Source: Utricularia gibba (Eukaryota > Plantae > Magnoliophyta). Taken from it: DNA of 27,282 bases. Below the pieces are notes generated by a model. The model did no database searches. It was not told the DNA's origin and worked only from the letters and a program-made list of their open reading frames with translations. The translations under genes were made by a program, and so were the position numbers. This document shows positions 1 through 27,282 of the stretch, in pieces; within the stretch, counting starts at the first letter, position 1; each line of letters opens with the position of its first letter. The DNA lies in assembly GCA_002189035.1 (NCBI GenBank), contig NEEC01000215.1, positions 1-27,282 on the forward strand, given 5' to 3'.

Positions 1-503
1 TTATTTTAAATCTTAATTAGCGTTCCACCGTTAGGAGCAATTTAGAACGTGTATACATTACAATGCCATGCCACACGGGCGTGGTTTACGCAAACCCACG
101 CCCGTGTGCCCTTGCAATGTAAACACGCTCCACATTGCTCCTAAGGATCGAGCGTTAACACAAGTTTCAAGTAAACCATCTCCACTCGATCCGAATCATG
201 TCTAAAGACCGAAAGCCAATAAAAATATTAAAATAAAAAATATACGCTCGATCCGCATCATATCTTAGAATCGAATGCAAATAGAATCGTTCAAATAAAA
301 AATATACACTCGATTGGAATCTTAACCAAGGATCGAATGCTAATTAAAATGATTAAATAAAAAATGCACACTCCATCCAAAGTATAACTAAGGTCGAATG
401 CTAATAAAATTAAAAACTAAGAAACTTTCACATGTAGTATATGCTTTAATAACTAACGTATTTACATTATTTATATTTTAATAAACATATATCACATGAT
501 TAT
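1..503. mobile_element. Foldback/MITE-like inverted-repeat element, copy 1 (truncated by window start; centre and right arm present)
   Basis: Contains the central CACACGGGCGTGG/CCACGCCCGTGTG hairpin and the right arm ending CACATGATTAT, as in the full copies. Confidence 0.7.
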
Positions 504-519
504 AAAAATATTTTTTTGT

Positions 520-768
520 CATTGTAGAAAGCTCATCACGCCACGCACACACCACCTGGAGAGGTTTCAACAGCTGTTATGAACTCACAACCCCTTGCTC
601 AGCAGATTCAGTAAAATTCTCTAACACTTGGGCTTCCAACGGATCATATCCCATATTCATTCATACGAAATTGTGCAAGAATAATGTGACTTTGAGTTTG
701 AACTAGATAGTAGGACGCTGATCGAAGAATGGCCATCGAGTCTCTAAAATTGGCCGTCCTCGCTCAAC
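520..768 (-). pseudogene. PIF/Harbinger-type DDE transposase C-terminal fragment, copy 1
   Basis: Same degenerate fragment as at 2841-3088, with extra single-base indels in this copy. Confidence 0.75.
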
Positions 769-1710
769 AAATGTGGGGTGCACGTGACATCCCAATTTCA
801 ACAAATGCATCATGATTTTCGTCGAGTGGGCCATGAGCCCGTCCGAACCCGGGGCCCGGGCCAAGGGCCCCTCGAGAGCGCCCGCCTCAATACGAGGAGG
901 TGTTCCTTCAAAAACCATATACGCGTCTCGTCACAACCCAACGTTAATAAATGCATCACTTTTTTTGGCGCGCTACTGCTGACTTTGGGCCTGAGTTCGG
1001 CACGACTCCGGCTCGATCAGGGTGCCCCACCGAGAGCTCCTCCTTAAGTATAAAGTGTGTTGTTGAAAAAAACCGTGTGCGGTTCTCGTGACATCCTAAC
1101 TTCAACAAATGCATCACGATTTTCGTCGAGTCGGACGGGACCGGGCTCCCGGGGCTCCGGACGAGGCGCAGCGCCCGCTCCCCTCCCCAAAACTAGAAGG
1201 TGTTCCATGGAAAACCATTTAGGCGGCTCGTGACAACCCAAAGTTAATAAATGCATCACTTTCTTTGCCGGGCTACAATGACTTTACGCTCGAGCCTGGT
1301 ACGACGTATGGGAAGATTCGAGTGCCCCCGAGAGCGTCTCCACAAGTATAAAGCGTGTTGTTGAAAAAACCGTGTTGGGTGCACGTGACATCCTAATTTC
1401 AACAAATGTGTCACGATTTTCGCCGAGTGGGACCAGAGTGGGCTCATCAGCCAGACCGAACCCGGGGCCAAGCCAAGGGCCCTCGAGAGCGCCCCCACAA
1501 AACTAGATGGTGTTCCACGAAAAAAAATTAGGCGGCTCGTGATAACCCAACGCTAAGAATGCATCCCTTTTTTCGCCGGGCTAAAACTGACTTTGGGCTC
1601 ATGCCCGGCGCGACCCCAGCCCGTGTGCATACGCAGCAGCACCACGAGGCCACATGGGCTTGGTTAATGCCGCGTGCTCGAGCAGCAGCCACAAGGCCAT
1701 ACGGCCGTGG
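769..1710. repeat. GC/CpG-rich block of nested ~150/~300-bp subrepeats, copy 1
   Basis: Recurring CGTGACATCC..CAACAAATGCATCA / CGTSACAACCCAA..TAATAAATGCATCA anchors. Equivalent blocks: 3089-4035, 5419-6369, 7750-8697, 10079-11027, 12410-13359, 14742-15693, 17076-18025, 19408-20356, 21738-22687, 24070-25022, 26395-27282 (truncated). Confidence 0.9.
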
Positions 1711-1766
1711 AAAAAAAGAAAAACAACCATAAAATACAATAAGCCAAAAATAAAAATAAAATTGAT

Positions 1767-1923
1767 AAACCCTTGGTTCGGTTCGGGCCCAATCAAAACC
1801 CGTAGGGTTTAACCCGTTCGGGTTGAACAGAAAGACAACCCCATGGGTCATGCAAACTGTAATACCCAGAATTTCATCGGGTTGGGTCCGAACCTGAATG
1901 GATCCAACCCAGGCCCATCTCTA
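1767..1923 (-). mobile_element. Solitary hAT-like transposon terminus (putative TIR TAGAGATGG plus subterminal repeats), copy 1
   Basis: The - strand starts TAGAGATGGGCCTGGGTTGG, resembling the Ac TIR (T/C)AGGGATGAAA and the Tam3 TIR TAAAGATG. It is followed by clustered AACCCG/CGGGTT/CCGAA motifs. Equivalent segments: 4093-4249, 6426-6582, 8755-8911, 11085-11241, 13417-13573, 15751-15907, 18083-18239, 20413-20569, 22745-22901, 25074-25230. No partner TIR seen. Confidence 0.5.
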
Positions 1924-2031
1924 ATCATAATCATATGATATAGGTTTATTAAATTATAAATAATTGAAATACATTATTTATTAAACCGTAGGATAACTGT
2001 GAAAGCTTCTTTGACTTAATTATTACCATTT

Positions 2032-2720
2032 GATCCTCAGTTGTACTTTGGATGGAGTGTGTATTTTTACTTTAGTCAATTTAATTAGCATTCGATCCTT
2101 GGTTATGATTCAGATCATATTTGCTATTTTTTTACTTTAAATATTTTTATTATCATTCGATCCTTAAGTATAATGCGGATCGAGCGCGTATTTTTTTTTA
2201 ATATTTTTTATTAGCATTCGAACGTTAGGTATGCTGCGGATCGAGCGTATATTTTTCACTCTCATATTTTTATTAGCCTTAGATCCTTAGGTATACTTTG
2301 GATCGAGTGCATATTCATTTATTTTAAATCTTAATTAGCGTTCCACCGTTAGGAGCAATTTAGAACGTGTATACATTACAATGCCATGCCACACGGGCGT
2401 GGTTTACGCACAACCCACGCCCGTGTGCCCTTGCAATGTAAACACGCTCCACATTGCTCCTAAGGATCGAGCGTTAACACAAGTTTCAAGTAAACCATCT
2501 CCACTCGATCCGAATCATGTCTAAAGACCGAAAGCCAATAAAAATATTAAAATAAAAAATATACGCTCGATCCGCATCATATCTTAGAATCGAATGCAAA
2601 TAGAATCGTTCAAATAAAAAATATACACTCGATTGGAATCTTAACCAAGGATCGAATGCTAATTAAAATGATTAAAATAAAAATGCACACTCCATCCAAA
2701 GTATAACTAAGGGTCGAATG
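2032..2720. repeat. ~62-bp subrepeats inside the foldback arms (5 left, 4 right), each with a TCGATCC-N13-GGATCGA-like dyad
   Basis: GATCC-type anchors at 2032, 2094, 2159, 2220 and 2282. A perfect dyad lies at 2157-2183. The same layout occurs in every monomer. Confidence 0.85.
2390..2427. other. Central hairpin of the foldback: perfect 13-bp GC-rich stem with a 12-nt loop
   Basis: CACACGGGCGTGG (2390-2402), loop TTTACGCACAAC, CCACGCCCGTGTG (2415-2427). Confidence 0.9.
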
Positions 2721-2840
2721 CTAATAAAATTAAAAACTAAGAAACTTTCACATGTAGTATATGCTTTAATAACTAACGTATTTACATTATTTATATTTTA
2801 ATAAACATATATCACATGATTATAAAAATATTTTTTTTGT

Positions 2841-3088
2841 CATTGTAGAAAGCTCATCACGCCACGCACACCACCTGGAGAGGTTTCAACAGCTGTTATG
2901 AACTCACAACCCCTTGCTCAGCAGATTCAGTAAAATTCTCTAACACTTGGGCTTCCAACGGATCATATCCCATATTCATTCATACGAAATTGTGCAAGAA
3001 TAATGTGACTTTGAGTTTGAACTAGATAGTAGGACGCTGATCGAAGAATGGCCCATCGAGTCTCTAAAATTGGCCGTCCTCGCTCAAC
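2841..3088 (-). pseudogene. PIF/Harbinger-type DDE transposase C-terminal fragment, copy 2 (frameshifted, internal stop)
   Basis: Three frames read VERGRPILETRWAILRSASYYLVQTQSHIILA / LHNFV*MNMGYDPLEAQVLENFTESAEQGV / EFITAVETSPGWCAWRDELSTM. This matches the motif order I recall for plant PIF/Harbinger (DDE_Tnp_4-type) transposase C-termini: IERxFGxLKxRWAILRS..FY..TQ..II.AC.LLHNF..M..DPLE..FI..VE.S..W..WRD.LA..M. Recognised by eye. Confidence 0.8.
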
Positions 3089-4252
3089 AAATGTGGGGTG
3101 CACGTGACATCCCAATTTCAACAAATGCATCATGATTTTCGTCGAGTGGGCCCATGAGCCCGTCCGAACCCGGGGCCCGGGCCAAGGGCCCTCGAGAGCG
3201 CCCGCCTCAATACGAGGAGGTGTTCCTTCAAAAACCATATACGCGTCTCGTCACAACCCAACGTTAATAAATGCATCACTTTTTTTGGCGCGCTACTGCT
3301 GACTTTGGGCCTGAGTTCGGCACGACCTCCGGCTCGATCAGGGTGCCCCCCGAGAGCTCCTCCTTAAGTATAAAGTGTGTTGTTGAAAAAAACGTGTGCG
3401 GTTCTCGTGACATCCTAACTTCAACAAATGCATCACGATTTTCGTCGAGTCGGACGGGACCGGGCTCCCGGGGCCCGGACGAGGCGCAGCGCCCGCTCCC
3501 CTCCCCCCAAAACTAGAAGGTGTTCCATGGAAAACCATTTAGGCGGCTCGTGACAACCCAAAGTTAATAAATGCATCACTTTCTTTGCCGGGCTACAATG
3601 ACTTTACGCTCGAGCCTGGTACGACGTATGGGAAGATTCGAGTGCCCCCGAGAGCGTCTCCACAAGTATAAAGCGTGTTGTTGAAAAAACCGTGTTGGGT
3701 GCACGTGACATCCTAATTTCAACAAATGTGTCACGATTTTCGCCGAGTGGGACCAGAGTGGGCTCATCAGCCAGACCGAACCCGGGGCCCAAGCCAAGGG
3801 CCCCTCGAGAGCGCCCCCCACAAAACTAGATGGTGTTCCACGAAAAAAAATTAGGCGGCTCGTGATAACCCAACGCTAAGAAATGCATCCCTTTTTTCGC
3901 CGGGCTAAAACTGACTTTGGGCTCATGCCCGGCGCGACCCCAGCCCGTGTGCATACGCAGCAGCACCACGAGGCCACATGGGCTTGGTTAATGCCCGCGT
4001 GCTCGAGCAGCAGCCACAAGGCCATACGGCCGTGGAAAAAAAGAAAAACAACCATAAAATACAATAAGCCAAAAATAAAAAATAAAATTGATAAACCCTT
4101 GGTTCGGTTCGGGCCCAATCAAAACCCGTAGGGTTTAACCCGTTCGGGTTGAACAGAAAGACAACCCCATGGGTCATGCAAACTGTAATACCCAGAATTT
4201 CATCGGGTTGGGTCCGAACCTGAATGGATCCAACCCAGGCCCATCTCTAATC

Positions 4253-5152
4253 ATAATCATATGATATAGGTTTATTAAATTATAAATAATTGAAATACAT
4301 TATTTATTAAACCGTAGGATAACTGTGAAAGCTTCTTTGACTTAATTATTACCATTTGATCCTCAGTTGTACTTTGGATGGAGTGTGTATTTTTACTTTA
4401 GTCAATTTAATTAGCATTCGATCCTTGGTTATGATTCAGATCATATTTGCTATTTTTTTACTTTAAATATTTTTATTATCATTCGATCCTTAAGTATAAT
4501 GCGGATCGAGCGCGTATTTTTTATTTTAATATTTTTTATTAGCATTCGAACGTTAGGTATGCTGCGGATCGAGCGTATATTTTTCACTCTCATATTTTTA
4601 TTAGCCTTAGATCCTTAGGTATACTTTGGATCGAGTGCATATTCATTTATTTTAAATCTTAATTAGCGTTCCACCGTTAGGAGCAATTTAGAACGTGTAT
4701 ACATTACAATGCCATGCCACACGGGCGTGGTTTACGCACAACCCACGCCCGTGTGCCCTTGCAATGTAAACACGCTCCACATTGCTCCTAAGGATCGAGC
4801 GTTAACACAAGTTTCAAGTAAACCATCTCCACTCGATCCGAATCATGTCTAAAGACCGAAAGCCAATAAAAATATTAAAATAAAAAAATATACGCTCGAT
4901 CCGCATCATATCTTAGAATCGAATGCAAATAGAATCGTTCAATAAAAAAATATACACTCGATTGGAATCTTAACCAAGGATCGAATGCTAATTAAAATGA
5001 TTAAAATAAAAATGCACACTCCATCCAAAGTATAACTAAGGGTCGAATGCTAATAAAATTAAAAACTAAGAAACTTTCACATGTAGTATATGCTTTAATA
5101 ACTAACGTATTTACATTATTTATATTTTAATAAACATATATCACATGATTAT
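4253..5152. mobile_element. Foldback/MITE-like inverted-repeat element, copy 3
   Basis: Same ends and arms as 1927-2823. Confidence 0.75.
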
Positions 5153-5169
5153 AAAAATATTTTTTTTGT

Positions 5170-5418
5170 CATTGTAGAAAGCTCATCACGCCACGCACAC
5201 CACCCTGGAGAGGTTTCAACAGCTGTTATGAACTCACAACCCCTTGCTCAGCAGATTCAGTAAAATTCTCTAACACTTGGGCTTCCAACGGATCATATCC
5301 CATATTCATTCATACGAAATTGTGCAAGAATAATGTGACTTTGAGTTTGAACTAGATAGTAGGACGCTGATCGAAGAATGGCCCATCGAGTCTCTAAAAT
5401 TGGCCGTCCTCGCTCAAC
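5170..5418 (-). pseudogene. PIF/Harbinger-type transposase fragment, copy 3
   Basis: Same sequence and lesions as 2841-3088; RWAILRSASYY is visible in ORF 5293..5610. Confidence 0.8.
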
Positions 5419-6585
5419 AAATGTGGGGTGCACGTGACATCCCAATTTCAACAAATGCATCATGATTTTCGTCGAGTGGGCCCATGAGCCCGTCCGAACC
5501 CGGGGCCCGGGCCAAGGGCCCCTCGAGAGCGCCCGCCTCAATACGAGGAGGTGTTCCTTCAAAAACCATATACGCGTCTCGTCACAACCCAACGTTAATA
5601 AATGCATCACTTTTTTTGGCGCGCTACTGCTGACTTTGGGCCTGAGTTCGGCACGACCTCCGGCTCGATCAGGGTGCCCCCCGAGAGCTCCTCCTTAAGT
5701 ATAAAGTGTGTTGTTGAAAAAAACCGTGTGCGGTTCTCGTGACATCCTAACTTCAACAAATGCATCACGATTTTCGTCGAGTCGGACGGGACCGGGCTCC
5801 CGGGGCCCGGACGAGGCGCAGCGCCCGCTCCCTCCCCCCCAAAACTAGAAGGTGTTCCATGGAAAACCATTTAGGCGGCTCGTGACAACCCAAAGTTAAT
5901 AAATGCATCACTTTCTTTGCCGGGCTACAATGACTTTACGCTCGAGCCTGGTACGACGTATGGGAAGATTCGAGTGCCCCCCGAGAGCGTCTCCACAAGT
6001 ATAAAGCGTGTTGTTGAAAAAACCGTGTTGGGTGCACGTGACATCCTAATTTCAACAAATGTGTCACGATTTTCGCCGAGTGGGACCAGAGTGGGCTCAT
6101 CAGCCAGACCGAACCCGGGGCCCAAGCCAAGGGCCCCTCGAGAGCGCCCCCCACAAAACTAGATGGTGTTCCACGAAAAAAAATTAGGCGGCTCGTGATA
6201 ACCCAACGCTAAGAAATGCATCCCTTTTTTCGCCGGGCTAAAACTGACTTTGGGCTCATGCCCGGCGCGACCCCCAGCCCGTGTGCATACGCAGCAGCAC
6301 CACGAGGCCACATGGGCTTGGTTAATGCCCGCGTGCTCGAGCAGCAGCCACAAGGCCATACGGCCGTGGAAAAAAAGAAAAACAACCATAAAATACAATA
6401 AGCCAAAAATAAAAATAAAATTGATAAACCCTTGGTTCGGTTCGGGCCCAATCAAAACCCGTAGGGTTTAACCCGTTCGGGTTGAACAGAAAGACAACCC
6501 CATGGGTCATGCAAACTGTAATACCCAGAATTTCATCGGGTTGGGTCCGAACCTGAATGGATCCAACCCAGGCCCATCTCTAATC

Positions 6586-7484
6586 ATAATCATATGATAT
6601 AGGTTTATTAAATTATAAATAATTGAAATACATTATTTATTAAACCGTAGGATAACTGTGAAAGCTTCTTTGACTTAATTATTACCATTTGATCCTCAGT
6701 TGTACTTTGGATGGAGTGTGTATTTTTACTTTAGTCAATTTAATTAGCATTCGATCCTTGGTTATGATTCAGATCATATTTGCTATTTTTTTACTTTAAA
6801 TATTTTTATTATCATTCGATCCTTAAGTATAATGCGGATCGAGCGCGTATTTTTTATTTTAATATTTTTTATTAGCATTCGAACGTTAGGTATGCTGCGG
6901 ATCGAGCGTATATTTTTCACTCTCATATTTTTATTAGCCTTAGATCCTTAGGTATACTTTGGATCGAGTGCATATTCATTTATTTTAAATCTTAATTAGC
7001 GTTCCACCGTTAGGAGCAATTTAGAACGTGTATACATTACAATGCCATGCCACACGGGCGTGGTTTACGCACAACCCACGCCCGTGTGCCCTTGCAATGT
7101 AAACACGCTCCACATTGCTCCTAAGGATCGAGCGTTAACACAAGTTTCAAGTAAACCATCTCCACTCGATCCGAATCATGTCTAAAGACCGAAAGCCAAT
7201 AAAAATATTAAAATAAAAAATATACGCTCGATCCGCATCATATCTTAGAATCGAATGCAAATAGAATCGTTCAAATAAAAAATATACACTCGATTGGAAT
7301 CTTAACCAAGGATCGAATGCTAATTAAAATGATTAAAATAAAAATGCACACTCCATCCAAAGTATAACTAAGGGTCGAATGCTAATAAAATTAAAAACTA
7401 AGAAACTTTCACATGTAGTATATGCTTTAATAACTAACGTATTTACATTATTTATATTTTAATAAACATATATCACATGATTAT
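6586..7484. mobile_element. Foldback/MITE-like inverted-repeat element, copy 4
   Basis: Same ends and arms as 1927-2823. Confidence 0.75.
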
Positions 7485-7500
7485 AAAAATATTTTTTTGT

Positions 7501-7749
7501 CATTGTAGAAAGCTCATCACGCCACGCACACCACCCTGGAGAGGTTTCAACAGCTGTTATGAACTCACAACCCCTTGCTCAGCAGATTCAGTAAAATTCT
7601 CTAACACTTGGGCTTCCAACGGATCATATCCCATATTCATTCATACGAAATTGTGCAAGAATAATGTGACTTTGAGTTTGAACTAGATAGTAGGACGCTG
7701 ATCGAAGAATGGCCCATCGAGTCTCTAAAATTGGCCGTCCTCGCTCAAC
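7501..7749 (-). pseudogene. PIF/Harbinger-type transposase fragment, copy 4
   Basis: Same sequence and lesions as 2841-3088. Confidence 0.8.
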
Positions 7750-8914
7750 AAATGTGGGGTGCACGTGACATCCCAATTTCAACAAATGCATCATGATTTT
7801 CGTCGAGTGGGCCCATGAGCCCGTCCGAACCCGGGGCCCGGGCCAAGGGCCCCTCGAGAGCGCCCGCCTCAATACGAGGAGGTGTTCCTTCAAAAACCAT
7901 ATACGCGTCTCGTCACAACCCAACGTTAATAAATGCATCACTTTTTTTGGCGCGCTACTGCTGACTTTGGGCCTGAGTTCGGCACGACCTCCGGCTCGAT
8001 CAGGGTGCCCCCGAGAGCTCCTCCTTAAGTATAAAGTGTGTTGTTGAAAAAAACGTGTGCGGTTCTCGTGACATCCTAACTTCAACAAATGCATCACGAT
8101 TTTCGTCGAGTCGGACGGGACCGGGCTCCCGGGGCCCGGACGAGGCGCAGCGCCCGCTCCCCTCCCCCCAAAACTAGAAGGTGTTCCATGGAAAACCATT
8201 TAGGCGGCTCGTGACAACCCAAAGTTAATAAATGCATCACTTTCTTTGCCGGGCTACAATGACTTTACGCTCGAGCCTGGTACGACGTATGGGAAGATTC
8301 GAGTGCCCCCCGAGAGCGTCTCCACAAGTATAAAGCGTGTTGTTGAAAAAACCGTGTTGGGTGCACGTGACATCCTAATTTCAACAAATGTGTCACGATT
8401 TTCGCCGAGTGGGACCAGAGTGGGCTCATCAGCCAGACCGAACCCGGGGCCCAAGCCAAGGGCCCCTCGAGAGCGCCCCCACAAAACTAGATGGTGTTCC
8501 ACGAAAAAAAATTAGGCGGCTCGTGATAACCCAACGCTAAGAAATGCATCCCTTTTTTCGCCGGGCTAAAACTGACTTTGGGCTCATGCCCGGCGCGACC
8601 CCCAGCCCGTGTGCATACGCAGCAGCACCACGAGGCCACATGGGCTTGGTTAATGCCCGCGTGCTCGAGCAGCAGCCACAAGGCCATACGGCCGTGGAAA
8701 AAAAGAAAAACAACCATAAAATACAATAAGCCAAAAATAAAAAATAAAATTGATAAACCCTTGGTTCGGTTCGGGCCCAATCAAAACCCGTAGGGTTTAA
8801 CCCGTTCGGGTTGAACAGAAAGACAACCCCATGGGTCATGCAAACTGTAATACCCAGAATTTCATCGGGTTGGGTCCGAACCTGAATGGATCCAACCCAG
8901 GCCCATCTCTAATC

Positions 8915-9813
8915 ATAATCATATGATATAGGTTTATTAAATTATAAATAATTGAAATACATTATTTATTAAACCGTAGGATAACTGTGAAAGCTTCTTT
9001 GACTTAATTATTACCATTTGATCCTCAGTTGTACTTTGGATGGAGTGTGTATTTTTACTTTAGTCAATTTAATTAGCATTCGATCCTTGGTTATGATTCA
9101 GATCATATTTGCTATTTTTTTACTTTAAATATTTTTATTATCATTCGATCCTTAAGTATAATGCGGATCGAGCGCGTATTTTTTATTTTAATATTTTTTA
9201 TTAGCATTCGAACGTTAGGTATGCTGCGGATCGAGCGTATATTTTTCACTCTCATATTTTTATTAGCCTTAGATCCTTAGGTATACTTTGGATCGAGTGC
9301 ATATTCATTTATTTTAAATCTTAATTAGCGTTCCACCGTTAGGAGCAATTTAGAACGTGTATACATTACAATGCCATGCCACACGGGCGTGGTTTACGCA
9401 CAACCCACGCCCGTGTGCCCTTGCAATGTAAACACGCTCCACATTGCTCCTAAGGATCGAGCGTTAACACAAGTTTCAAGTAAACCATCTCCACTCGATC
9501 CGAATCATGTCTAAAGACCGAAAGCCAATAAAAATATTAAAATAAAAAATATACGCTCGATCCGCATCATATCTTAGAATCGAATGCAAATAGAATCGTT
9601 CAAATAAAAAATATACACTCGATTGGAATCTTAACCAAGGATCGAATGCTAATTAAAATGATTAAAATAAAAATGCACACTCCATCCAAAGTATAACTAA
9701 GGGTCGAATGCTAATAAAATTAAAAACTAAGAAACTTTCACATGTAGTATATGCTTTAATAACTAACGTATTTACATTATTTATATTTTAATAAACATAT
9801 ATCACATGATTAT
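8915..9813. mobile_element. Foldback/MITE-like inverted-repeat element, copy 5
   Basis: Same ends and arms as 1927-2823. Confidence 0.75.
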
Positions 9814-9830
9814 AAAAATATTTTTTTTGT

Positions 9831-10078
9831 CATTGTAGAAAGCTCATCACGCCACGCACACCACCCTGGAGAGGTTTCAACAGCTGTTATGAACTCACAA
9901 CCCTTGCTCAGCAGATTCAGTAAAATTCTCTAACACTTGGGCTTCCAACGGATCATATCCCATATTCATTCATACGAAATTGTGCAAGAATAATGTGACT
10001 TTGAGTTTGAACTAGATAGTAGGACGCTGATCGAAGAATGGCCCATCGAGTCTCTAAAATTGGCCGTCCTCGCTCAAC
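9831..10078 (-). pseudogene. PIF/Harbinger-type transposase fragment, copy 5
   Basis: Same sequence and lesions as 2841-3088. Confidence 0.8.
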
Positions 10079-11244
10079 AAATGTGGGGTGCACGTGACAT
10101 CCCAATTTCAACAAATGCATCATGATTTTCGTCGAGTGGGCCCATGAGCCCGTCCGAACCCGGGGCCCGGGCCAAGGGCCCCTCGAGAGCGCCCGCCTCA
10201 ATACGAGGAGGTGTTCCTTCAAAAACCATATACGCGTCTCGTCACAACCCAACGTTAATAAATGCATCACTTTTTTTGGCGCGCTACTGCTGACTTTGGG
10301 CCTGAGTTCGGCACGACCTCCGGCTCGATCAGGGTGCCCCCGAGAGCTCCTCCTTAAGTATAAAGTGTGTTGTTGAAAAAAACCGTGTGCGGTTCTCGTG
10401 ACATCCTAACTTCAACAAATGCATCACGATTTTCGTCGAGTCGGACGGGACCGGGCTCCCGGGGCCCGGACGAGGCGCAGCGCCCGCTCCCCTCCCCCCA
10501 AAACTAGAAGGTGTTCCATGGAAAACCATTTAGGCGGCTCGTGACAACCCAAAGTTAATAAATGCATCACTTTCTTTGCCGGGCTACAATGACTTTACGC
10601 TCGAGCCTGGTACGACGTATGGGAAGATTCGAGTGCCCCCGAGAGCGTCTCCACAAGTATAAAGCGTGTTGTTGAAAAAACCGTGTTGGGTGCACGTGAC
10701 ATCCTAATTTCAACAAATGTGTCACGATTTTCGCCGAGTGGGACCAGAGTGGGCTCATCAGCCAGACCGAACCCGGGGCCCAAGCCAAGGGCCCCTCGAG
10801 AGCGCCCCCCACAAAACTAGATGGTGTTCCACGAAAAAAAATTAGGCGGCTCGTGATAACCCAACGCTAAGAAATGCATCCCTTTTTTCGCCGGGCTAAA
10901 ACTGACTTTGGGCTCATGCCCGGCGCGACCCCCAGCCCGTGTGCATACGCAGCAGCACCACGAGGCCACATGGGCTTGGTTAATGCCCGCGTGCTCGAGC
11001 AGCAGCCACAAGGCCATACGGCCGTGGAAAAAAAGAAAAACAACCATAAAATACAATAAGCCAAAAATAAAAAATAAAATTGATAAACCCTTGGTTCGGT
11101 TCGGGCCCAATCAAAACCCGTAGGGTTTAACCCGTTCGGGTTGAACAGAAAGACAACCCCATGGGTCATGCAAACTGTAATACCCAGAATTTCATCGGGT
11201 TGGGTCCGAACCTGAATGGATCCAACCCAGGCCCATCTCTAATC

Positions 11245-12143
11245 ATAATCATATGATATAGGTTTATTAAATTATAAATAATTGAAATACATTATTTATT
11301 AAACCGTAGGATAACTGTGAAAGCTTCTTTGACTTAATTATTACCATTTGATCCTCAGTTGTACTTTGGATGGAGTGTGTATTTTTACTTTAGTCAATTT
11401 AATTAGCATTCGATCCTTGGTTATGATTCAGATCATATTTGCTATTTTTTTACTTTAAATATTTTTATTATCATTCGATCCTTAAGTATAATGCGGATCG
11501 AGCGCGTATTTTTTATTTTAATATTTTTTATTAGCATTCGAACGTTAGGTATGCTGCGGATCGAGCGTATATTTTTCACTCTCATATTTTTATTAGCCTT
11601 AGATCCTTAGGTATACTTTGGATCGAGTGCATATTCATTTATTTTAAATCTTAATTAGCGTTCCACCGTTAGGAGCAATTTAGAACGTGTATACATTACA
11701 ATGCCATGCCACACGGGCGTGGTTTACGCACAACCCACGCCCGTGTGCCCTTGCAATGTAAACACGCTCCACATTGCTCCTAAGGATCGAGCGTTAACAC
11801 AAGTTTCAAGTAAACCATCTCCACTCGATCCGAATCATGTCTAAAGACCGAAAGCCAATAAAAATATTAAAATAAAAAATATACGCTCGATCCGCATCAT
11901 ATCTTAGAATCGAATGCAAATAGAATCGTTCAAATAAAAAATATACACTCGATTGGAATCTTAACCAAGGATCGAATGCTAATTAAAATGATTAAAATAA
12001 AAATGCACACTCCATCCAAAGTATAACTAAGGGTCGAATGCTAATAAAATTAAAAACTAAGAAACTTTCACATGTAGTATATGCTTTAATAACTAACGTA
12101 TTTACATTATTTATATTTTAATAAACATATATCACATGATTAT
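11245..12143. mobile_element. Foldback/MITE-like inverted-repeat element, copy 6
   Basis: Same ends and arms as 1927-2823. Confidence 0.75.
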
Positions 12144-12160
12144 AAAAATATTTTTTTTGT

Positions 12161-12409
12161 CATTGTAGAAAGCTCATCACGCCACGCACACCACCCTGGA
12201 GAGGTTTCAACAGCTGTTATGAACTCACAACCCCTTGCTCAGCAGATTCAGTAAAATTCTCTAACACTTGGGCTTCCAACGGATCATATCCCATATTCAT
12301 TCATACGAAATTGTGCAAGAATAATGTGACTTTGAGTTTGAACTAGATAGTAGGACGCTGATCGAAGAATGGCCCATCGAGTCTCTAAAATTGGCCGTCC
12401 TCGCTCAAC
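12161..12409 (-). pseudogene. PIF/Harbinger-type transposase fragment, copy 6
   Basis: Same sequence and lesions as 2841-3088. Confidence 0.8.
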
Positions 12410-13576
12410 AAATGTGGGGTGCACGTGACATCCCAATTTCAACAAATGCATCATGATTTTCGTCGAGTGGGCCCATGAGCCCGTCCGAACCCGGGGCCCG
12501 GGCCAAGGGCCCCTCGAGAGCGCCCGCCTCAATACGAGGAGGTGTTCCTTCAAAAACCATATACGCGTCTCGTCACAACCCAACGTTAATAAATGCATCA
12601 CTTTTTTTGGCGCGCTACTGCTGACTTTGGGCCTGAGTTCGGCACGACCTCCGGCTCGATCAGGGTGCCCCACCGAGAGCTCCTCCTTAAGTATAAAGTG
12701 TGTTGTTGAAAAAAACCGTGTGCGGTTCTCGTGACATCCTAACTTCAACAAATGCATCACGATTTTCGTCGAGTCGGACGGGACCGGGCTCCCGGGGCCC
12801 GGACGAGGCGCAGCGCCCGCTCCCCTCCCCCCAAAACTAGAAGGTGTTCCATGGAAAACCATTTAGGCGGCTCGTGACAACCCAAAGTTAATAAATGCAT
12901 CACTTTCTTTGCCGGGCTACAATGACTTTACGCTCGAGCCTGGTACGACGTATGGGAAGATTCGAGTGCCCCCGAGAGCGTCTCCACAAGTATAAAGCGT
13001 GTTGTTGAAAAAACCGTGTTGGGTGCACGTGACATCCTAATTTCAACAAATGTGTCACGATTTTCGCCGAGTGGGACCAGAGTGGGCTCATCAGCCAGAC
13101 CGAACCCGGGGCCCAAGCCAAGGGCCCCTCGAGAGCGCCCCCCACAAAACTAGATGGTGTTCCACGAAAAAAAATTAGGCGGCTCGTGATAACCCAACGC
13201 TAAGAAATGCATCCCTTTTTTCGCCGGGCTAAAACTGACTTTGGGCTCATGCCCGGCGCGACCCCAGCCCGTGTGCATACGCAGCAGCACCACGAGGCCA
13301 CATGGGCTTGGTTAATGCCCGCGTGCTCGAGCAGCAGCCACAAGGCCATACGGCCGTGGAAAAAAAGAAAAACAACCATAAAATACAATAAGCCAAAAAT
13401 AAAAAATAAAATTGATAAACCCTTGGTTCGGTTCGGGCCCAATCAAAACCCGTAGGGTTTAACCCGTTCGGGTTGAACAGAAAGACAACCCCATGGGTCA
13501 TGCAAACTGTAATACCCAGAATTTCATCGGGTTGGGTCCGAACCTGAATGGATCCAACCCAGGCCCATCTCTAATC

Positions 13577-14475: not shown

Positions 14476-14492
14476 AAAAATATTTTTTTTGT

Positions 14493-16809: not shown

Positions 16810-16826
16810 AAAAATATTTTTTTTGT

Positions 16827-17075
16827 CATTGTAGAAAGCTCATCACGCCACGCACACCACCCTGGAGAGGTTTCAACAGCTGTTATGAACTCACAACCCC
16901 TTGCTCAGCAGATTCAGTAAAATTCTCTAACACTTGGGCTTCCAACGGATCATATCCCATATTCATTCATACGAAATTGTGCAAGAATAATGTGACTTTG
17001 AGTTTGAACTAGATAGTAGGACGCTGATCGAAGAATGGCCCATCGAGTCTCTAAAATTGGCCGTCCTCGCTCAAC
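16827..17075 (-). pseudogene. PIF/Harbinger-type transposase fragment, copy 8
   Basis: Same sequence and lesions as 2841-3088. Confidence 0.8.
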
Positions 17076-19141: not shown

Positions 19142-19158
19142 AAAAATATTTTTTTTGT

Positions 19159-19407
19159 CATTGTAGAAAGCTCATCACGCCACGCACACCACCCTGGAGA
19201 GGTTTCAACAGCTGTTATGAACTCACAACCCCTTGCTCAGCAGATTCAGTAAAATTCTCTAACACTTGGGCTTCCAACGGATCATATCCCATATTCATTC
19301 ATACGAAATTGTGCAAGAATAATGTGACTTTGAGTTTGAACTAGATAGTAGGACGCTGATCGAAGAATGGCCCATCGAGTCTCTAAAATTGGCCGTCCTC
19401 GCTCAAC
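19159..19407 (-). pseudogene. PIF/Harbinger-type transposase fragment, copy 9
   Basis: Same sequence and lesions as 2841-3088. Confidence 0.8.
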
Positions 19408-20572
19408 AAATGTGGGGTGCACGTGACATCCCAATTTCAACAAATGCATCATGATTTTCGTCGAGTGGGCCCATGAGCCCGTCCGAACCCGGGGCCCGGG
19501 CCAAGGGCCCCTCGAGAGCGCCCGCCTCAATACGAGGAGGTGTTCCTTCAAAAACCATATACGCGTCTCGTCACAACCCAACGTTAATAAATGCATCACT
19601 TTTTTTGGCGCGCTACTGCTGACTTTGGGCCTGAGTTCGGCACGACCTCCGGCTCGATCAGGGTGCCCCCCGAGAGCTCCTCCTTAAGTATAAAGTGTGT
19701 TGTTGAAAAAAACCGTGTGCGGTTCTCGTGACATCCTAACTTCAACAAATGCATCACGATTTTCGTCGAGTCGGACGGGACCGGGCTCCCGGGGCCCGGA
19801 CGAGGCGCAGCGCCCGCTCCCCTCCCCCCAAAACTAGAAGGTGTTCCATGGAAAACCATTTAGGCGGCTCGTGACAACCCAAAGTTAATAAATGCATCAC
19901 TTTCTTTGCCGGGCTACAATGACTTTACGCTCGAGCCTGGTACGACGTATGGGAAGATTCGAGTGCCCCCGAGAGCGTCTCCACAAGTATAAAGCGTGTT
20001 GTTGAAAAAACCGTGTTGGGTGCACGTGACATCCTAATTTCAACAAATGTGTCACGATTTTCGCCGAGTGGGACCAGAGTGGGCTCATCAGCCAGACCGA
20101 ACCCGGGGCCCAAGCCAAGGGCCCCTCGAGAGCGCCCCCACAAAACTAGATGGTGTTCCACGAAAAAAAATTAGGCGGCTCGTGATAACCCAACGCTAAG
20201 AAATGCATCCCTTTTTTCGCCGGGCTAAAACTGACTTTGGGCTCATGCCCGGCGCGACCCCCAGCCCGTGTGCATACGCAGCAGCACCACGAGGCCACAT
20301 GGGCTTGGTTAATGCCCGCGTGCTCGAGCAGCAGCCACAAGGCCATACGGCCGTGGAAAAAAAGAAAACAACCATAAAATACAATAAGCCAAAAATAAAA
20401 AATAAAATTGATAAACCCTTGGTTCGGTTCGGGCCCAATCAAAACCCGTAGGGTTTAACCCGTTCGGGTTGAACAGAAAGACAACCCCATGGGTCATGCA
20501 AACTGTAATACCCAGAATTTCATCGGGTTGGGTCCGAACCTGAATGGATCCAACCCAGGCCCATCTCTAATC

Positions 20573-21471
20573 ATAATCATATGATATAGGTTTATTAAAT
20601 TATAAATAATTGAAATACATTATTTATTAAACCGTAGGATAACTGTGAAAGCTTCTTTGACTTAATTATTACCATTTGATCCTCAGTTGTACTTTGGATG
20701 GAGTGTGTATTTTTACTTTAGTCAATTTAATTAGCATTCGATCCTTGGTTATGATTCAGATCATATTTGCTATTTTTTTACTTTAAATATTTTTATTATC
20801 ATTCGATCCTTAAGTATAATGCGGATCGAGCGCGTATTTTTTATTTTAATATTTTTTATTAGCATTCGAACGTTAGGTATGCTGCGGATCGAGCGTATAT
20901 TTTTCACTCTCATATTTTTATTAGCCTTAGATCCTTAGGTATACTTTGGATCGAGTGCATATTCATTTATTTTAAATCTTAATTAGCGTTCCACCGTTAG
21001 GAGCAATTTAGAACGTGTATACATTACAATGCCATGCCACACGGGCGTGGTTTACGCACAACCCACGCCCGTGTGCCCTTGCAATGTAAACACGCTCCAC
21101 ATTGCTCCTAAGGATCGAGCGTTAACACAAGTTTCAAGTAAACCATCTCCACTCGATCCGAATCATGTCTAAAGACCGAAAGCCAATAAAAATATTAAAA
21201 TAAAAAATATACGCTCGATCCGCATCATATCTTAGAATCGAATGCAAATAGAATCGTTCAAATAAAAAATATACACTCGATTGGAATCTTAACCAAGGAT
21301 CGAATGCTAATTAAAATGATTAAAATAAAAATGCACACTCCATCCAAAGTATAACTAAGGGTCGAATGCTAATAAAATTAAAAACTAAGAAACTTTCACA
21401 TGTAGTATATGCTTTAATAACTAACGTATTTACATTATTTATATTTTAATAAACATATATCACATGATTAT
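20573..21471. mobile_element. Foldback/MITE-like inverted-repeat element, copy 10
   Basis: Same ends and arms as 1927-2823. Confidence 0.75.
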
Positions 21472-21488
21472 AAAAATATTTTTTTTGT

Positions 21489-21737
21489 CATTGTAGAAAG
21501 CTCATCACGCCACGCACACCACCCTGGAGAGGTTTCAACAGCTGTTATGAACTCACAACCCCTTGCTCAGCAGATTCAGTAAAATTCTCTAACACTTGGG
21601 CTTCCAACGGATCATATCCCATATTCATTCATACGAAATTGTGCAAGAATAATGTGACTTTGAGTTTGAACTAGATAGTAGGACGCTGATCGAAGAATGG
21701 CCCATCGAGTCTCTAAAATTGGCCGTCCTCGCTCAAC
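21489..21737 (-). pseudogene. PIF/Harbinger-type transposase fragment, copy 10
   Basis: Same sequence and lesions as 2841-3088. Confidence 0.8.
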
Positions 21738-22904
21738 AAATGTGGGGTGCACGTGACATCCCAATTTCAACAAATGCATCATGATTTTCGTCGAGTGGGC
21801 CCATGAGCCCGTCCGAACCCGGGGCCCGGGCCAAGGGCCCCTCGAGAGCGCCCGCCTCAATACGAGGAGGTGTTCCTTCAAAAACCATATACGCGTCTCG
21901 TCACAACCAACGTTAATAAATGCATCACTTTTTTTGGCGCGCTACTGCTGACTTTGGGCCCGAGTTCGGCACGACCTCCGGCCGATCAGGGTGCCCCCCC
22001 GAGAGCTCCTCCTTAAGTATAAAGTGTGTTGTTGAAAAAAACCGTGTGCGGTTCTCGTGACATCCTAACTTCAACAAATGCATCACGATTTTCGTCGAGT
22101 CGGACGGGACCGGGCTCCCGGGGCCCGGACGAGGCGCAGCGCCCGCTCCCCTCCCCCCAAAACTAGAAGGTGTTCCATGGAAAACCATTTAGGCGGCTCG
22201 TGACAACCCAAAGTTAATAAATGCATCACTTTCTTTGCCGGGCTACAATGACTTTACGCTCGAGCCTGGTACGACGTATGGGAAGATTCGAGTGCCCCCG
22301 AGAGCGTCTCCACAAGTATAAAGCGTGTTGTTGAAAAAACCGTGTTGGGTGCACGTGACATCCTAATTTCAACAAATGTGTCACGATTTTCGCCGAGTGG
22401 GACCAGAGTGGGCTCATCAGCCAGACCGAACCCGGGGCCCAAGCCAAGGGCCCCTCGAGAGCGCCCCCCCACAAAACTAGATGGTGTTCCACGAAAAAAA
22501 ATTAGGCGGCTCGTGATAACCCAACGCTAAGAAATGCATCCCTTTTTTCGCCGGGCTAAAACTGACTTTGGGCTCATGCCCGGCGCGACCCCCAGCCCGT
22601 GTGCATACGCAGCAGCACCACGAGGCCACATGGGCTTGGTTAATGCCCGCGTGCTCGAGCAGCAGCCACAAGGCCATACGGCCGTGGAAAAAAAGAAAAA
22701 CAACCATAAAATACAATAAGCCAAAAATAAAAAATAAAATTGATAAACCCTTGGTTCGGTTCGGGCCCAATCAAAACCCGTAGGGTTTAACCCGTTCGGG
22801 TTGAACAGAAAGACAACCCCATGGGTCATGCAAACTGTAATACCCAGAATTTCATCGGGTTGGGTCCGAACCTGAATGGATCCAACCCAGGCCCATCTCT
22901 AATC

Positions 22905-23803
22905 ATAATCATATGATATAGGTTTATTAAATTATAAATAATTGAAATACATTATTTATTAAACCGTAGGATAACTGTGAAAGCTTCTTTGACTTAATTA
23001 TTACCATTTGATCCTCAGTTGTACTTTGGATGGAGTGTGTATTTTTACTTTAGTCAATTTAATTAGCATTCGATCCTTGGTTATGATTCAGATCATATTT
23101 GCTATTTTTTTACTTTAAATATTTTTATTATCATTCGATCCTTAAGTATAATGCGGATCGAGCGCGTATTTTTTATTTTAATATTTTTTATTAGCATTCG
23201 AACGTTAGGTATGCTGCGGATCGAGCGTATATTTTTCACTCTCATATTTTTATTAGCCTTAGATCCTTAGGTATACTTTGGATCGAGTGCATATTCATTT
23301 ATTTTAAATCTTAATTAGCGTTCCACCGTTAGGAGCAATTTAGAACGTGTATACATTACAATGCCATGCCACACGGGCGTGGTTTACGCACAACCCACGC
23401 CCGTGTGCCCTTGCAATGTAAACACGCTCCACATTGCTCCTAAGGATCGAGCGTTAACACAAGTTTCAAGTAAACCATCTCCACTCGATCCGAATCATGT
23501 CTAAAGACCGAAAGCCAATAAAAATATTAAAATAAAAAATATACGCTCGATCCGCATCATATCTTAGAATCGAATGCAAATAGAATCGTTCAAATAAAAA
23601 ATATACACTCGATTGGAATCTTAACCAAGGATCGAATGCTAATTAAAATGATTAAAATAAAAATGCACACTCCATCCAAAGTATAACTAAGGGTCGAATG
23701 CTAATAAAATTAAAAACTAAGAAACTTTCACATGTAGTATATGCTTTAATAACTAACGTATTTACATTATTTATATTTTAATAAACATATATCACATGAT
23801 TAT
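22905..23803. mobile_element. Foldback/MITE-like inverted-repeat element, copy 11
   Basis: Same ends and arms as 1927-2823. Confidence 0.75.
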
Positions 23804-23820
23804 AAAAATATTTTTTTTGT

Positions 23821-24069
23821 CATTGTAGAAAGCTCATCACGCCACGCACACCACCCTGGAGAGGTTTCAACAGCTGTTATGAACTCACAACCCCTTGCTC
23901 AGCAGATTCAGTAAAATTCTCTAACACTTGGGCTTCCAACGGATCATATCCCATATTCATTCATACGAAATTGTGCAAGAATAATGTGACTTTGAGTTTG
24001 AACTAGATAGTAGGACGCTGATCGAAGAATGGCCCATCGAGTCTCTAAAATTGGCCGTCCTCGCTCAAC
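23821..24069 (-). pseudogene. PIF/Harbinger-type transposase fragment, copy 11
   Basis: Same sequence and lesions as 2841-3088. Confidence 0.8.
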
Positions 24070-25233
24070 AAATGTGGGGTGCACGTGACATCCCAATTTC
24101 AACAAATGCATCATGATTTTCGTCGAGTGGGCCCATGAGCCCGTCCGAACCCGGGGCCCGGGCCAAGGCCCCTCGAGAGCGCCCGCCTCAATACGAGGAG
24201 GTGTTCCTTCAAAAACCATATACGCGTCTCGTCACAACCCAACGTTAATAAATGCATCACTTTTTTTGGCGCGCTACTGCTGACTTTGGGCCTGAGTTCG
24301 GCACGACCTCCGGCTCGATCAGGGTGCCCCACCGAGAGCTCCTCCTTAAGTATAAAGTGTGTTGTTGAAAAAAACGTGTGCGGTTCTCGTGACATCCTAA
24401 CTTCAACAAATGCATCACGATTTTCGTCGAGTCGGACGGGACCGGGCTCCCGGGGCCCGGACGAGGCGCAGCGCCCGCTCCCCTCCCCCCCAAAACTAGA
24501 AGGTGTTCCATGGAAAACCATTTAGGCGGCTCGTGACAACCCAAAGTTAATAAATGCATCACTTTCTTTGCCGGGCTACAATGACTTTACGCTCGAGCCT
24601 GGTACGACGTATGGGAAGATTCGAGTGCCCCCCGAGAGCGTCTCCACAAGTATAAAGCGTGTTGTTGAAAAAACCGTGTTGGGTGCACGTGACATCCTAA
24701 TTTCAACAAATGTGTCACGATTTTCGCCGAGTGGGACCAGAGTGGGCTCATCAGCCAGACCGAACCCGGGGCCCAAGCCAAGGGCCCCTCGAGAGCGCCC
24801 CCCACAAAACTAGATGGTGTTCCACGAAAAAAAATTAGGCGGCTCGTGATAACCCAACGCTAAGAAATGCATCCCTTTTTTTCGCCGGGCTAAAACTGAC
24901 TTTGGGCTCATGCCCGGCGCGACCCCCAGCCCGTGTGCATACGCAGCAGCACCACGAGGCCACATGGGCTTGGTTAATGCCCCGCGTGCTCGAGCAGCAG
25001 CCACAAGGCCATACGGCCGTGGAAAAAAGAAAAACAACCATAAATACAATAAGCCAAAAAAAATAAAATTGATAAACCCTTGGTTCGGTTCGGGCCCAAT
25101 CAAAACCCGTAGGGTTTAACCCGTTCGGGTTGAACAGAAAGACAACCCCATGGGTCATGCAAACTGTAATACCCAGAATTTCATCGGGTTGGGTCCGAAC
25201 CTGAATGGATCCAACCCAGGCCCATCTCTAATC

Positions 25234-26130
25234 ATAATCATATGATATAGGTTTATTAAATTATAAATAATTGAAATACATTATTTATTAAACCGTAGGA
25301 TAACTGTGAAAGCTTCTTTGACTTAATTATTACCATTTGATCCTCAGTTGTACTTTGGATGGAGTGTGTATTTTTACTTTAGTCAATTTAATTAGCATTC
25401 GATCCTTGGTTATGATTCAGATCATATTTGCTATTTTTTTACTTTAAATATTTTTATATCATTCGATCCTTAAGTATAATGCGGATCGAGCGCGTATTTT
25501 TTATTTTAATATTTTTTATTAGCATTCGAACGTTAGGTATGCTGCGGATCGAGCGTATATTTTTCACTCTCATATTTTTATTAGCCTTAGATCCTTAGGT
25601 ATACTTTGGATCGAGTGCATATTCATTTATTTTAAATCTTAATTAGCGTTCCACCGTTAGGAGCAATTTAGAACGTGTATACATTACAATGCCATGCCAC
25701 ACGGGCGTGGTTTACGCACAACCCACGCCCGTGTGCCCTTGCAATGTAAACACGCTCCACATTGCTCCTAAGGATCGAGCGTTAACACAAGTTTCAAGTA
25801 AACCATCTCCACTCGATCCGAATCATGTCTAAAGACCGAAAGCCAATAAAAATATTAAAATAAAAAATATACGCTCGATCCGCATCATATCTTAGAATCG
25901 AATGCAAATAGAATCGTTCAAATAAAAATATACACTCGATTGGAATCTTAACCAAGGATCGAATGCTAATTAAAATGATTAAAATAAAAATGCACACTCC
26001 ATCCAAAGTATAACTAAGGGTCGAATGCTAATAAAATTAAAAACTAAGAAACTTTCACATGTAGTATATGCTTTAATAACTAACGTATTTACATTATTTA
26101 TATTTTAATAAACATATATCACATGATTAT
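25234..26130. mobile_element. Foldback/MITE-like inverted-repeat element, copy 12
   Basis: Same ends and arms as 1927-2823. Confidence 0.75.
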
Positions 26131-26146
26131 AAAATATTTTTTTTGT

Positions 26147-26394
26147 CATTGTAGAAAGCTCATCACGCCACGCACACCACCCTGGAGAGGTTTCAACAGC
26201 TGTTATGAACTCACACCCCTTGCTCAGCAGATTCAGTAAAATTCTCTAACACTTGGGCTTCCAACGGATCATATCCCATATTCATTCATACGAAATTGTG
26301 CAAGAATAATGTGACTTTGAGTTTGAACTAGATAGTAGGACGCTGATCGAAGAATGGCCCATCGAGTCTCTAAAATTGGCCGTCCTCGCTCAAC
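26147..26394 (-). pseudogene. PIF/Harbinger-type transposase fragment, copy 12
   Basis: Same sequence and lesions as 2841-3088. Confidence 0.8.
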
Positions 26395-27282
26395 AAATGT
26401 GGGGTGCACGTGACATCCCAATTTCAACAAATGCATCATGATTTTCGTCGAGTGGGCCCATGAGCCCGTCCGAACCCGGGGCCCGGGCCAAGGGCCCCTC
26501 GAGAGCGCCCGCCTCAATACGAGGAGGTGTTCCTTCAAAAACCATATACGCGTCTCGTCACAACCCAACGTTAATAAATGCATCACTTTTTTTGGCGCGC
26601 TACTGCTGACTTTGGGCCTGAGTTCGGCACGACCTCCGGCTCGATCAGGGTGCCCCACCGAGAGCTCCTCCTTAAGTATAAAGTGTGTTGTTGAAAAAAA
26701 CCGTGTGCGGTTCTCGTGACATCCTAACTTCAACAAATGCATCACGATTTTCGTCGAGTCGGACGGGACCGGGCTCCCGGGGCCCGGACGAGGCGCAGCG
26801 CCCGCTCCCCTCCCCCCCAAAACTAGAAGGTGTTCCATGGAAAACCATTTAGGCGGCTCGTGACAACCCAAAGTTAATAAATGCATCACTTTCTTTGCCG
26901 GGCTACAATGACTTTACGCTCGAGCCTGGTACGACGTATGGGAAGATTCGAGTGCCCCCGAGAGCGTCTCCACAAGTATAAAGCGTGTTGTTGAAAAAAC
27001 CGTGTTGGGTGCACGTGACATCCTAATTTCAACAAATGTGTCACGATTTTCGCCGAGTGGGACCAGAGTGGCTCATCAGCCAGACCGAACCCGGGCCCAA
27101 GCCAAGGCCCCTCGAGAGCGCCCCCCCCACAAAACTAGATGGTGTTCCACGAAAAAAAATTAGGGGCTCGTGATAACCCAACGCTAAGAAATGCATCCCT
27201 TTTTTCGCCGGCTAAAACTGACTTTGGGCTCATGCCCGGCGCGACCCCCAGCCCGTGTGCATACGCAGCAGCACCACGAGGC

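Follow-up and report, generated by a model that had tools for sequence, protein, structure and literature searches.

The 27,282-bp stretch of Utricularia gibba DNA analysed here (hereafter the window) is filled from end to end by copies of a 2.33-kb sequence, which raises the question of what this unit was built from and how it came to be repeated. The probable answer is a genuine long-monomer satellite (macrosatellite) of the plant nuclear genome, with a unit derived from transposon-graveyard DNA.

The tandem array and its unit

The array spans positions 1..27282 and, having no edge inside the window, is open at both ends. Twelve occurrences of a 30-mer anchor, spaced 2319-2334 bp apart, give the unit length; the window thus contains 11.7 unit copies arranged head-to-tail (27282/2332), the tandem repetition that characterizes satellites. 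Aligned with one another, the 11 full monomers show 99.7-100% identity. In the phase chosen here, units start at positions 184, 2503, 4831, 7164, 9493, and 11823 (copies 1-6) and 14155, 16489, 18821, 21151, 23483, and 25811 (copies 7-12). All module coordinates are given in monomer 5 (9493-11822, plus strand), which serves as the reference unit; the remaining units are shifted by approximately 2,332 bp per copy. The preliminary description of this DNA had proposed a 2.33-kb monomer, repeated head-to-tail about 11.7 times and carrying a single site each for HindIII and BamHI, and both proposals hold: the two sites, in the sequence contexts originally quoted, each occur exactly 11 times in the window, once per unit (HindIII at 11321..11326 and BamHI at 11218-11223).

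Only short open reading frames (ORFs) are present, all within repeats, as is typical of a gene-free satellite unit. The unit contains no tRNA and no Rfam family scoring above threshold: the sole signal, at 11681-11771, is MIR6143-like and sub-threshold (28 bits compared to a gathering score of 75). CpG observed/expected ratios in the unit are 1.05-2.2 with no transition excess, so that CpG decay analysis gives no methylation signature. No independent sequence was found beyond this assembly: a 26-mer taken at the centre of the hairpin had no match in a metagenome scan, and eight ORF translations were absent from a collection of 15 billion proteins. The unit is non-coding and plant-like; the nearest protein relative of its transposase remnant (discussed below) carries the DDE_Tnp_4 and Plant_tran domains.

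Modules of the unit

The largest module is a foldback of 898 bp, which is complete at 11245..12142 and is supported by its folding z-score and by inverted repeats I1-I14. It consists of a left arm (11245-11672), a centre (11673-11821), and a right arm (11822-12142), the last being the sequence of 9493-9813 one unit earlier. The arms have a GC content of 27-28% and are 71-88% complementary to each other; the minimum free energy of the foldback DNA is -209.8 kcal/mol, compared to -73.9 +/- 4.3 kcal/mol for shuffled sequences (z = -31.8). In the right arm (9493..9813, plus strand; Tandem Repeats Finder period 62, repeat family D4), four 62-bp subrepeats (9494-9741) are followed by an AT-rich outer segment. 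The left arm contains five to six copies of 62-65 bp (11338..11672, minus strand), inverted relative to those of the right arm. These 62-bp subrepeats are 63-80% alike, and 10 copies across both arms have in common the conserved core CTCGATCC-N13-AAGGATCGAATGCTAAT. At the centre lies a GC-rich hairpin (11696..11761, inverted repeat I14) with 30-nt arms that are 83% complementary and a 6-nt loop. The module is accordingly organized like an FB-type element: arms of approximately 430 and 320 bp, each with four to six 62-bp subrepeats, around a 6-nt central loop. Its outer edges (11245 and 9813) share at most a TA dinucleotide, as chance alone would produce in AT-rich DNA.

The same arms can be read in another way. 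Tandem phases are indistinguishable, and the arms at 9493-9813 and 11245-11672 also flank a 1.43-kb interior (I1-I7); the array could then be a head-to-tail series of one cargo-carrying transposon (foldback or Pack-MULE-like), with arms of approximately 450 bp as its long terminal inverted repeats (TIRs), meeting at the foldback centre across a spacer of approximately 6 nt, and with the Harbinger piece, GC-rich block, and orphan end described below as captured cargo. From the terminus inwards, each arm would run from a unique GC-rich segment of approximately 45 bp through arrays of a conserved 38-bp motif to an AT-rich inner part, a layout like that of transposon ends with subterminal binding-site repeats; the CpG-containing motif cores are also kept, with an arm CpG observed/expected ratio of approximately 2. 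However, the inverted symmetry continues unbroken through the centre to the 6-nt loop (I8, I14), as in a simple hairpin element, and a 6-nt spacer corresponds to none of the target-site duplication lengths common in plants (8 bp for hAT, 9-11 bp for MULE, and 3 bp for PIF and CACTA elements). Such an array would have been seeded by double insertion into one target, giving a tandem dimer that grew by unequal exchange. Satellites that arose in this way are on record in Drosophila, where tandem transposon dimers formed by double insertion expand (PMC5932611): head-to-tail repeats, a very short spacer, and later unequal exchange are the points of likeness, with the unit here as the candidate single mobile element, whereas the spacer of approximately 6 nt again differs in having no usual target duplication length. 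We consider this origin unlikely, and describe the remaining modules as parts of a composite satellite unit.

The next module is the dead remnant of a PIF/Harbinger transposase C-terminus (9822..10078, minus strand), verified for 9907-10078. Its closest acceptable relative, P0002, was obtained by a full HMMER scan only (phmmer E value of 7e-4, 1.84 billion proteins searched) and itself matches the Pfam families DDE_Tnp_4 (PF13359, E = 2.5e-13) and Plant_tran (PF04827, E = 1.6e-8). P0001, which ranked first in that scan, is a bacterial repeat protein (Flg_new_2) whose similarity was put down to low complexity or chance and set aside. BLASTP aligns the remnant to P0002 with 72% identity over 32 amino acids, and tblastn yields two high-scoring segment pairs in two frames (72% and 81% identical, E = 1.3e-17), so that positions 10078-9907 encode 59 residues resembling the C-terminus of a DDE_Tnp_4 protein. 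These approximately 59 residues are recognizable via P0002, and the catalytic core is absent; the transposase piece is therefore a fragment and not a complete element. It is truncated at 10078, its reading frame shifts near 9983-9987, and a stop codon interrupts it in frame at 9970-9972: in contrast to a PIF/Harbinger gene, only the C-terminal tail is present, cut upstream, and it is a fossil. A tail in the third frame, down to approximately 9822, is plausible. When scanned directly against Pfam, the stop-free pieces gave no match, an ESM Atlas search gave no usable match, and a word-index protein search with the C-terminal region of a 192-aa ORF gave none. Four metagenome relatives of P0002 (L001-L004) are 41-53% identical to it; none has DNA in common with the unit, and their translated ORFs gave no match to it by tblastn (E <= 1).

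GC content steps from 27-28% in the foldback arms to 55% in the next module. This GC-rich block (10079..10940, plus strand), defined by self-BLAST, pairwise identity, and repeat families D1, D3, and D7-D9, comprises 2.8 copies of a subrepeat of approximately 300 bp with 76-84% identity overall and 79-84% in the pairwise comparison, each of which has a weaker half-period of approximately 150 bp (self-BLAST offsets 304, 602, and 157). Plant rDNA spacers typically contain GC-rich subrepeats of 150-300 bp, and long satellites derived from such spacers exist in Solanum; with its GC content and undepleted CpG, the block might therefore be taken for former subrepeats of an rDNA intergenic spacer from which the satellite arose. 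Against this, the unit has no rRNA or other Rfam match and the block is flanked by pieces of transposons rather than by rRNA genes, leaving an rDNA origin extremely improbable.

The block is followed by a short tail of 62% GC (10941..11030, plus strand) and by an A-rich stretch that leads into a segment of short CGGGTT/AACCCG-type motifs (11031..11244, minus strand), recognized from the sequence itself. This segment terminates in a TIR-like 18-mer (11222-11239) adjoining the foldback. The 18-mer is found once per unit and on a single strand (11 matches, where 0.03 are expected), and no inverted partner is present within the unit at up to 3 mismatches. PIF/Harbinger elements are recognized by a TIR pair with a 3-bp TTA/TAA target duplication; here, there is one TIR-like end per unit.

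The composition originally proposed for the monomer is thus borne out with respect to the foldback of approximately 900 bp, the GC-rich subrepeat block, and the one-sided TIR-like end. Of the proposed transposase remnant of approximately 250 bp, 9907-10078 is confirmed in two reading frames, while 9822-9906 is a presumptive extension. The count of at least four unrelated modules is unsupported as stated: the TIR-like end could belong with either the Harbinger remnant or the GC-rich block.

Copy variation and the origin of the array

Variation among the monomers is confined to 49 alignment columns, of which 48 reflect length differences of 1-2 bases or the alignment by-products of such differences, for the most part at homopolymers, and one is a clean substitution. 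The variable columns gather mainly in the two outermost full monomers, with 23 in the first and 14 in the last. This pattern looks like long-read consensus noise and not evolution, and collapse or polishing of a repeat contig would yield the same picture of near-identity. Two columns hinted at a four-unit higher-order repeat, which is not significant (permutation p = 0.09). The statement that the monomers repeat almost without substitutions therefore stands as to near-identity, with the qualification that one clean substitution is present and that variation consists chiefly of small length differences. The further claim of very recent amplification is left without support, as near-identity on a repeat-only long-read contig is indistinguishable from consensus polishing or collapse and is no evidence of youth. 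Because the differences are noise-like, age and true homogeneity are not measurable from this assembly.

The contig is pure repeat without flank, and its inter-copy differences are all noise-like and worst toward the ends; it could on these grounds be a concatemer of a 2.33-kb circle (extrachromosomal circular DNA, an organellar plasmid, or a rolling-circle multimer) or a product of the assembly, in which a few copies were over-expanded or collapsed. A small circular replicon would be recognized by an initiator gene and by an origin stem-loop with its nonanucleotide, but no Rep gene is found among the ORFs of the unit, neither TAATATTAC nor TAGTATTAC (the geminivirus/nanovirus nonanucleotide) occurs in it, and no ORF exceeds 133 codons from stop to stop in a consensus dimer. 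The content, moreover, is nuclear transposon debris, and a 27-kb contig requires multi-unit reads, which a sheared 2.3-kb circle would presumably not supply to a long-read library. We regard a circle or an assembly product as quite improbable.

The composite satellite remains the preferred reading, and the proposed mosaic of decayed, unrelated repeat modules amplified as a single block is upheld by the contrast between internal repeats that are 63-88% alike and unit copies that are nearly identical. The unit brings together a non-autonomous foldback-type element of 0.9 kb with 62-bp subrepeats, the final 60-85 or so codons of a defunct PIF/Harbinger transposase gene, an older GC-rich tandem repeat of approximately 300 bp (2.8 copies), and an orphan transposon-like end. 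These modules would have decayed first, with head-to-tail duplication of the whole block occurring later, possibly promoted by the large palindrome in each unit, and the block would subsequently have been expanded and homogenized as one unit. Expansion may have proceeded by unequal exchange between sister chromatids or homologues, by replication template switching, or alternatively by rolling-circle amplification of an excised circle.

Relation to known satellites and significance

Long composite monomers are not unusual among plant satellites: examples include Sobo of Solanum bulbocastanum (4.7 kb), potato centromeric repeats (up to 5.4 kb), rye B-chromosome repeats (0.9-4 kb), and VfSat of Vicia faba (0.7-2.0 kb) (PMC5895790). 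The array shares with these a non-coding monomer of kilobase size, head-to-tail arrangement, highly homogeneous copies, and a complex monomer that points to other genomic repeats as its source. Those from Solanum and rye consist mainly of retrotransposon pieces, whereas the present unit is DNA-transposon debris with an older tandem repeat. A second parallel is the foldback transposon Tetris and the TIR-220 satellite of Drosophila virilis (PMC4079207): in both cases, a foldback-type element with tandem subrepeats in its arms lies physically within a satellite-like array. In Tetris, however, only the 220-bp arm subrepeat was amplified, whereas the present unit takes in the entire foldback plus 1.4 kb of adjacent DNA, the 62-bp subrepeats stay at four to six per arm, and the host is a plant and not an insect; no sequence relationship is claimed. 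A literature search found no description of this repeat family. Both long composite satellites and the passage from transposon to satellite have been documented before, so the array opens no new question.

Assembled centromere regions of U. gibba have been reported to be without satellites (PMC8333044). That this array is the missing centromeric or pericentromeric satellite, or a "hairpin factory" providing a hairpin of approximately 900 bp every 2.3 kb for silencing small RNAs, or both, is a speculation to which we give little credence; if the hairpin factory were real, its small RNAs would silence a related foldback transposon family. If transcribed, the array could be a source of hairpin-derived small RNAs. 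It has no sequence-encoded product, and its biology is likely structural (heterochromatin). The array is a clean, fully dissected case of transposon-graveyard DNA turned into a satellite unit, in which the fossil transposase tail marks every copy as a descendant of one locus, and the unit, with its single HindIII and BamHI sites, is useful for repeat annotation of the genome and as a cytogenetic probe.

Organisation of the array and variation between units

The window is a tandem array of a 2.33-kb unit. Copies of a 30-mer anchor, 12 in all, are spaced 2319–2334 bp apart, equivalent to 11.7 units in 27,282 bases, and the array is open at both window ends. The head-to-tail repetition of approximately 11.7 copies proposed in the preliminary description is thus borne out, as is its assignment of a single HindIII and a single BamHI site to each monomer: in the sequence context quoted there, each site occurs exactly 11 times in the window (one per unit). 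Tandem Repeats Finder, run with a maximum period of 500, listed 62-bp subrepeats as the sole repeats, and these recur strictly periodically at approximately 2.33 kb.

The 2.33-kb units are certainly very similar to one another: in an alignment of the 11 full monomers, identity is 99.7–100%. There are 49 variable columns in this alignment, 48 of which represent 1–2-base length differences or alignment by-products (mostly in homopolymer runs), leaving one with a clean substitution. Departures from the consensus number 23 in the first full unit and 14 in the last, compared to 2–7 in interior units. This pattern is typical of errors in a long-read consensus, which are worst at low-coverage contig ends, and not of evolutionary divergence; in a pure-repeat contig, polishing also draws each unit toward the family consensus. 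Because the variation resembles consensus error and polishing homogenises the units, the very recent amplification claimed previously is unreadable from the window.

C-run length or position variants are present at alignment columns 1006–1007 (near 10498 in unit 5) in units 3 and 7 (and 8 and 11), and a second C-run variant is present at column 1151 (near 10640 in unit 5) in units 3–4, 7–8 and 11. The four-unit (approximately 9.3-kb) higher-order repeat hinted at by these two variants was not significant in a permutation test that took in all alignment columns (p = 0.09). Measured stop to stop, ORFs in a consensus dimer reach at most 133 codons, and the longer ones sit in the GC-rich repeats. 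Two short ORFs of unit 6 are joined by a difference in homopolymer length into one of 192 codons (12284–12862, minus strand) that extends out of the GC-rich repeats and into the fossil transposase, which shows how consensus errors make spurious ORFs in this array.

Modules of the 2.33-kb unit

Module coordinates refer to the fifth monomer (9493–11822). The transposase remnant lies on the minus strand from 10078 down to approximately 9822, the latter being an inferred limit. Its short stop-free pieces matched nothing in Pfam, in a word-index protein search or in Atlas; P0002, a 146-residue protein fragment from a Logan assembly with Pfam matches to DDE_Tnp_4 (E 2.5e-13) and Plant_tran (E 1.6e-8), was identified when a 41-residue piece was run against 1.84 billion proteins in a full HMMER scan. 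When P0002 was compared to the unit using tblastn, two collinear segments in different frames were found (joint E 1.3e-17), the first at 10078–9983 (72% over 32 residues) and the second at 9987–9907 (81% over 27 residues), which is interrupted by an in-frame stop at 9970–9972. The similarity ends sharply upstream of 10078, at the GC-rich block. A putative third-frame tail down to 9822 resembles the way in which such transposases usually end; P0002 stops short of this tail and its metagenome relatives are too distant to cover it. The fossil is a single broken fragment, present in all units of the near-identical array. The metagenome relatives of P0002 (L001–L004, from soil; e.g. contig Ga0137388_10069273) are stop-interrupted, Harbinger-type and 41–53% identical; they probably represent copies of eukaryotic transposons, with no DNA-level relation to the window.

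The GC-rich block (10079–10940) comprises 2.8 copies of an approximately 300-bp subrepeat (76–84% identity) with a weaker half-period of approximately 150 bp, and has a GC content of 55% compared to 27–28% in the foldback arms. It is directly followed by a 90-bp GC-rich tail (10941–11030) and then by an orphan end (11031–11244) consisting of an A-rich stretch and a segment with many short CGGGTT/AACCCG-type motifs. Each unit has a single copy of the 18-mer that closes the orphan end and directly adjoins the foldback; all copies lie on the same strand, and no inverted partner is present in the unit at three or fewer mismatches. The orphan end may be the 5' terminus of the Harbinger derivative to which the transposase remnant belongs.

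The foldback (11245–12142, 898 nt) crosses the unit boundary in the phase used. Folded as single-stranded DNA, it has a predicted energy of -209.8 kcal/mol, compared to -73.9 +/- 4.3 for shuffled sequences (z = -31.8). Its arms are 71–88% complementary and contain 4–6 copies of the 62-bp subrepeat; a 38-bp core, CTCGATCC-N13-AAGGATCGAATGCTAAT, is common to ten subrepeat copies and is followed by an A-rich linker. At the centre is a GC-rich hairpin with a 6-nt loop (11696–11761), into which the inverted-repeat symmetry extends. As phase is arbitrary in a tandem array, another reading is that a cargo-carrying element of 2.3 kb has these arms as its long terminal inverted repeats, with its copies placed head to tail across a spacer of approximately 6 nt; satellite formation by double insertion (PMC5932611) would agree with such an arrangement. 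However, the inverted symmetry is unbroken through the foldback centre and 6 nt is no common plant target duplication length, and for these reasons we consider such an element unlikely.

Each 62-bp arm subrepeat also contains a small inverted repeat, TCGATCC-N13-GGATCGA (9494–9741 and 11338–11713; in all units), and CpG in the arms is approximately twice expectation despite their GC content of 27–28%. These inverted repeats and the CpG retention would be compatible with conserved sites for protein binding or with very low methylation. Across modules, CpG observed/expected is 0.75–2.2 with no module depleted, and the 300-bp copies have no transition excess; a methylation-decay signature is therefore absent from the unit.

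No Rfam family scored above threshold in the unit, and derivation of the GC-rich block from an rDNA spacer appears highly improbable. The sole Rfam signal is a match of the central hairpin to MIR6143, a family of plant miRNA precursors (11681–11771, minus strand, once per unit; 28 bits, E 0.02); it is under the gathering score of 75 and probably reflects generic hairpin resemblance. No tRNA, telomere motif or geminivirus/nanovirus origin nonanucleotide was found in the unit. Neither a small-circle concatemer nor an assembly artefact is a probable explanation of the contig: the unit is without a replicon feature, its sequence is debris of nuclear transposons, and building a contig of 27 kb requires reads that each span many units.

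A probable composite long-monomer satellite

The internal repeats of the unit (subrepeats, foldback arms and 300-bp copies) are 63–88% identical, in contrast to the near-identical 2.33-kb units, and are, as judged from sequence, old. In the simplest history, a locus of dead repeats, nested or abutting, would have been present first; an initial tandem duplication of approximately 2.33 kb would have followed, and then array growth and homogenisation with the whole block as one unit. The array may have been amplified by unequal exchange, by template switching that the palindrome might have triggered, or by the rolling-circle route from an excised circle. The overall interpretation of the preliminary description is thus retained in part, as a composite of decayed repeats, and set aside with respect to recent amplification.

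Long-monomer plant satellites of composite origin have been documented in Vicia faba (0.7–2.0 kb) and rye B chromosomes (0.9–4 kb), and also include Sobo (4.7 kb) and potato centromeric repeats of up to 5.4 kb (PMC5895790). In Drosophila virilis, a satellite was seeded by a foldback transposon (PMC4079207), but there the arm subrepeat alone was amplified, whereas here the 2.33-kb block was amplified as one unit. Our literature search found no paper describing Utricularia satellites. For U. gibba, the regions put forward as centromeric are said to be without satellite repeats (PMC8333044), a statement that bears on the 2.33-kb array only if the array proves to be centromeric. The 2.33-kb array is best read as a satellite of the composite, long-monomer kind already documented in plants.
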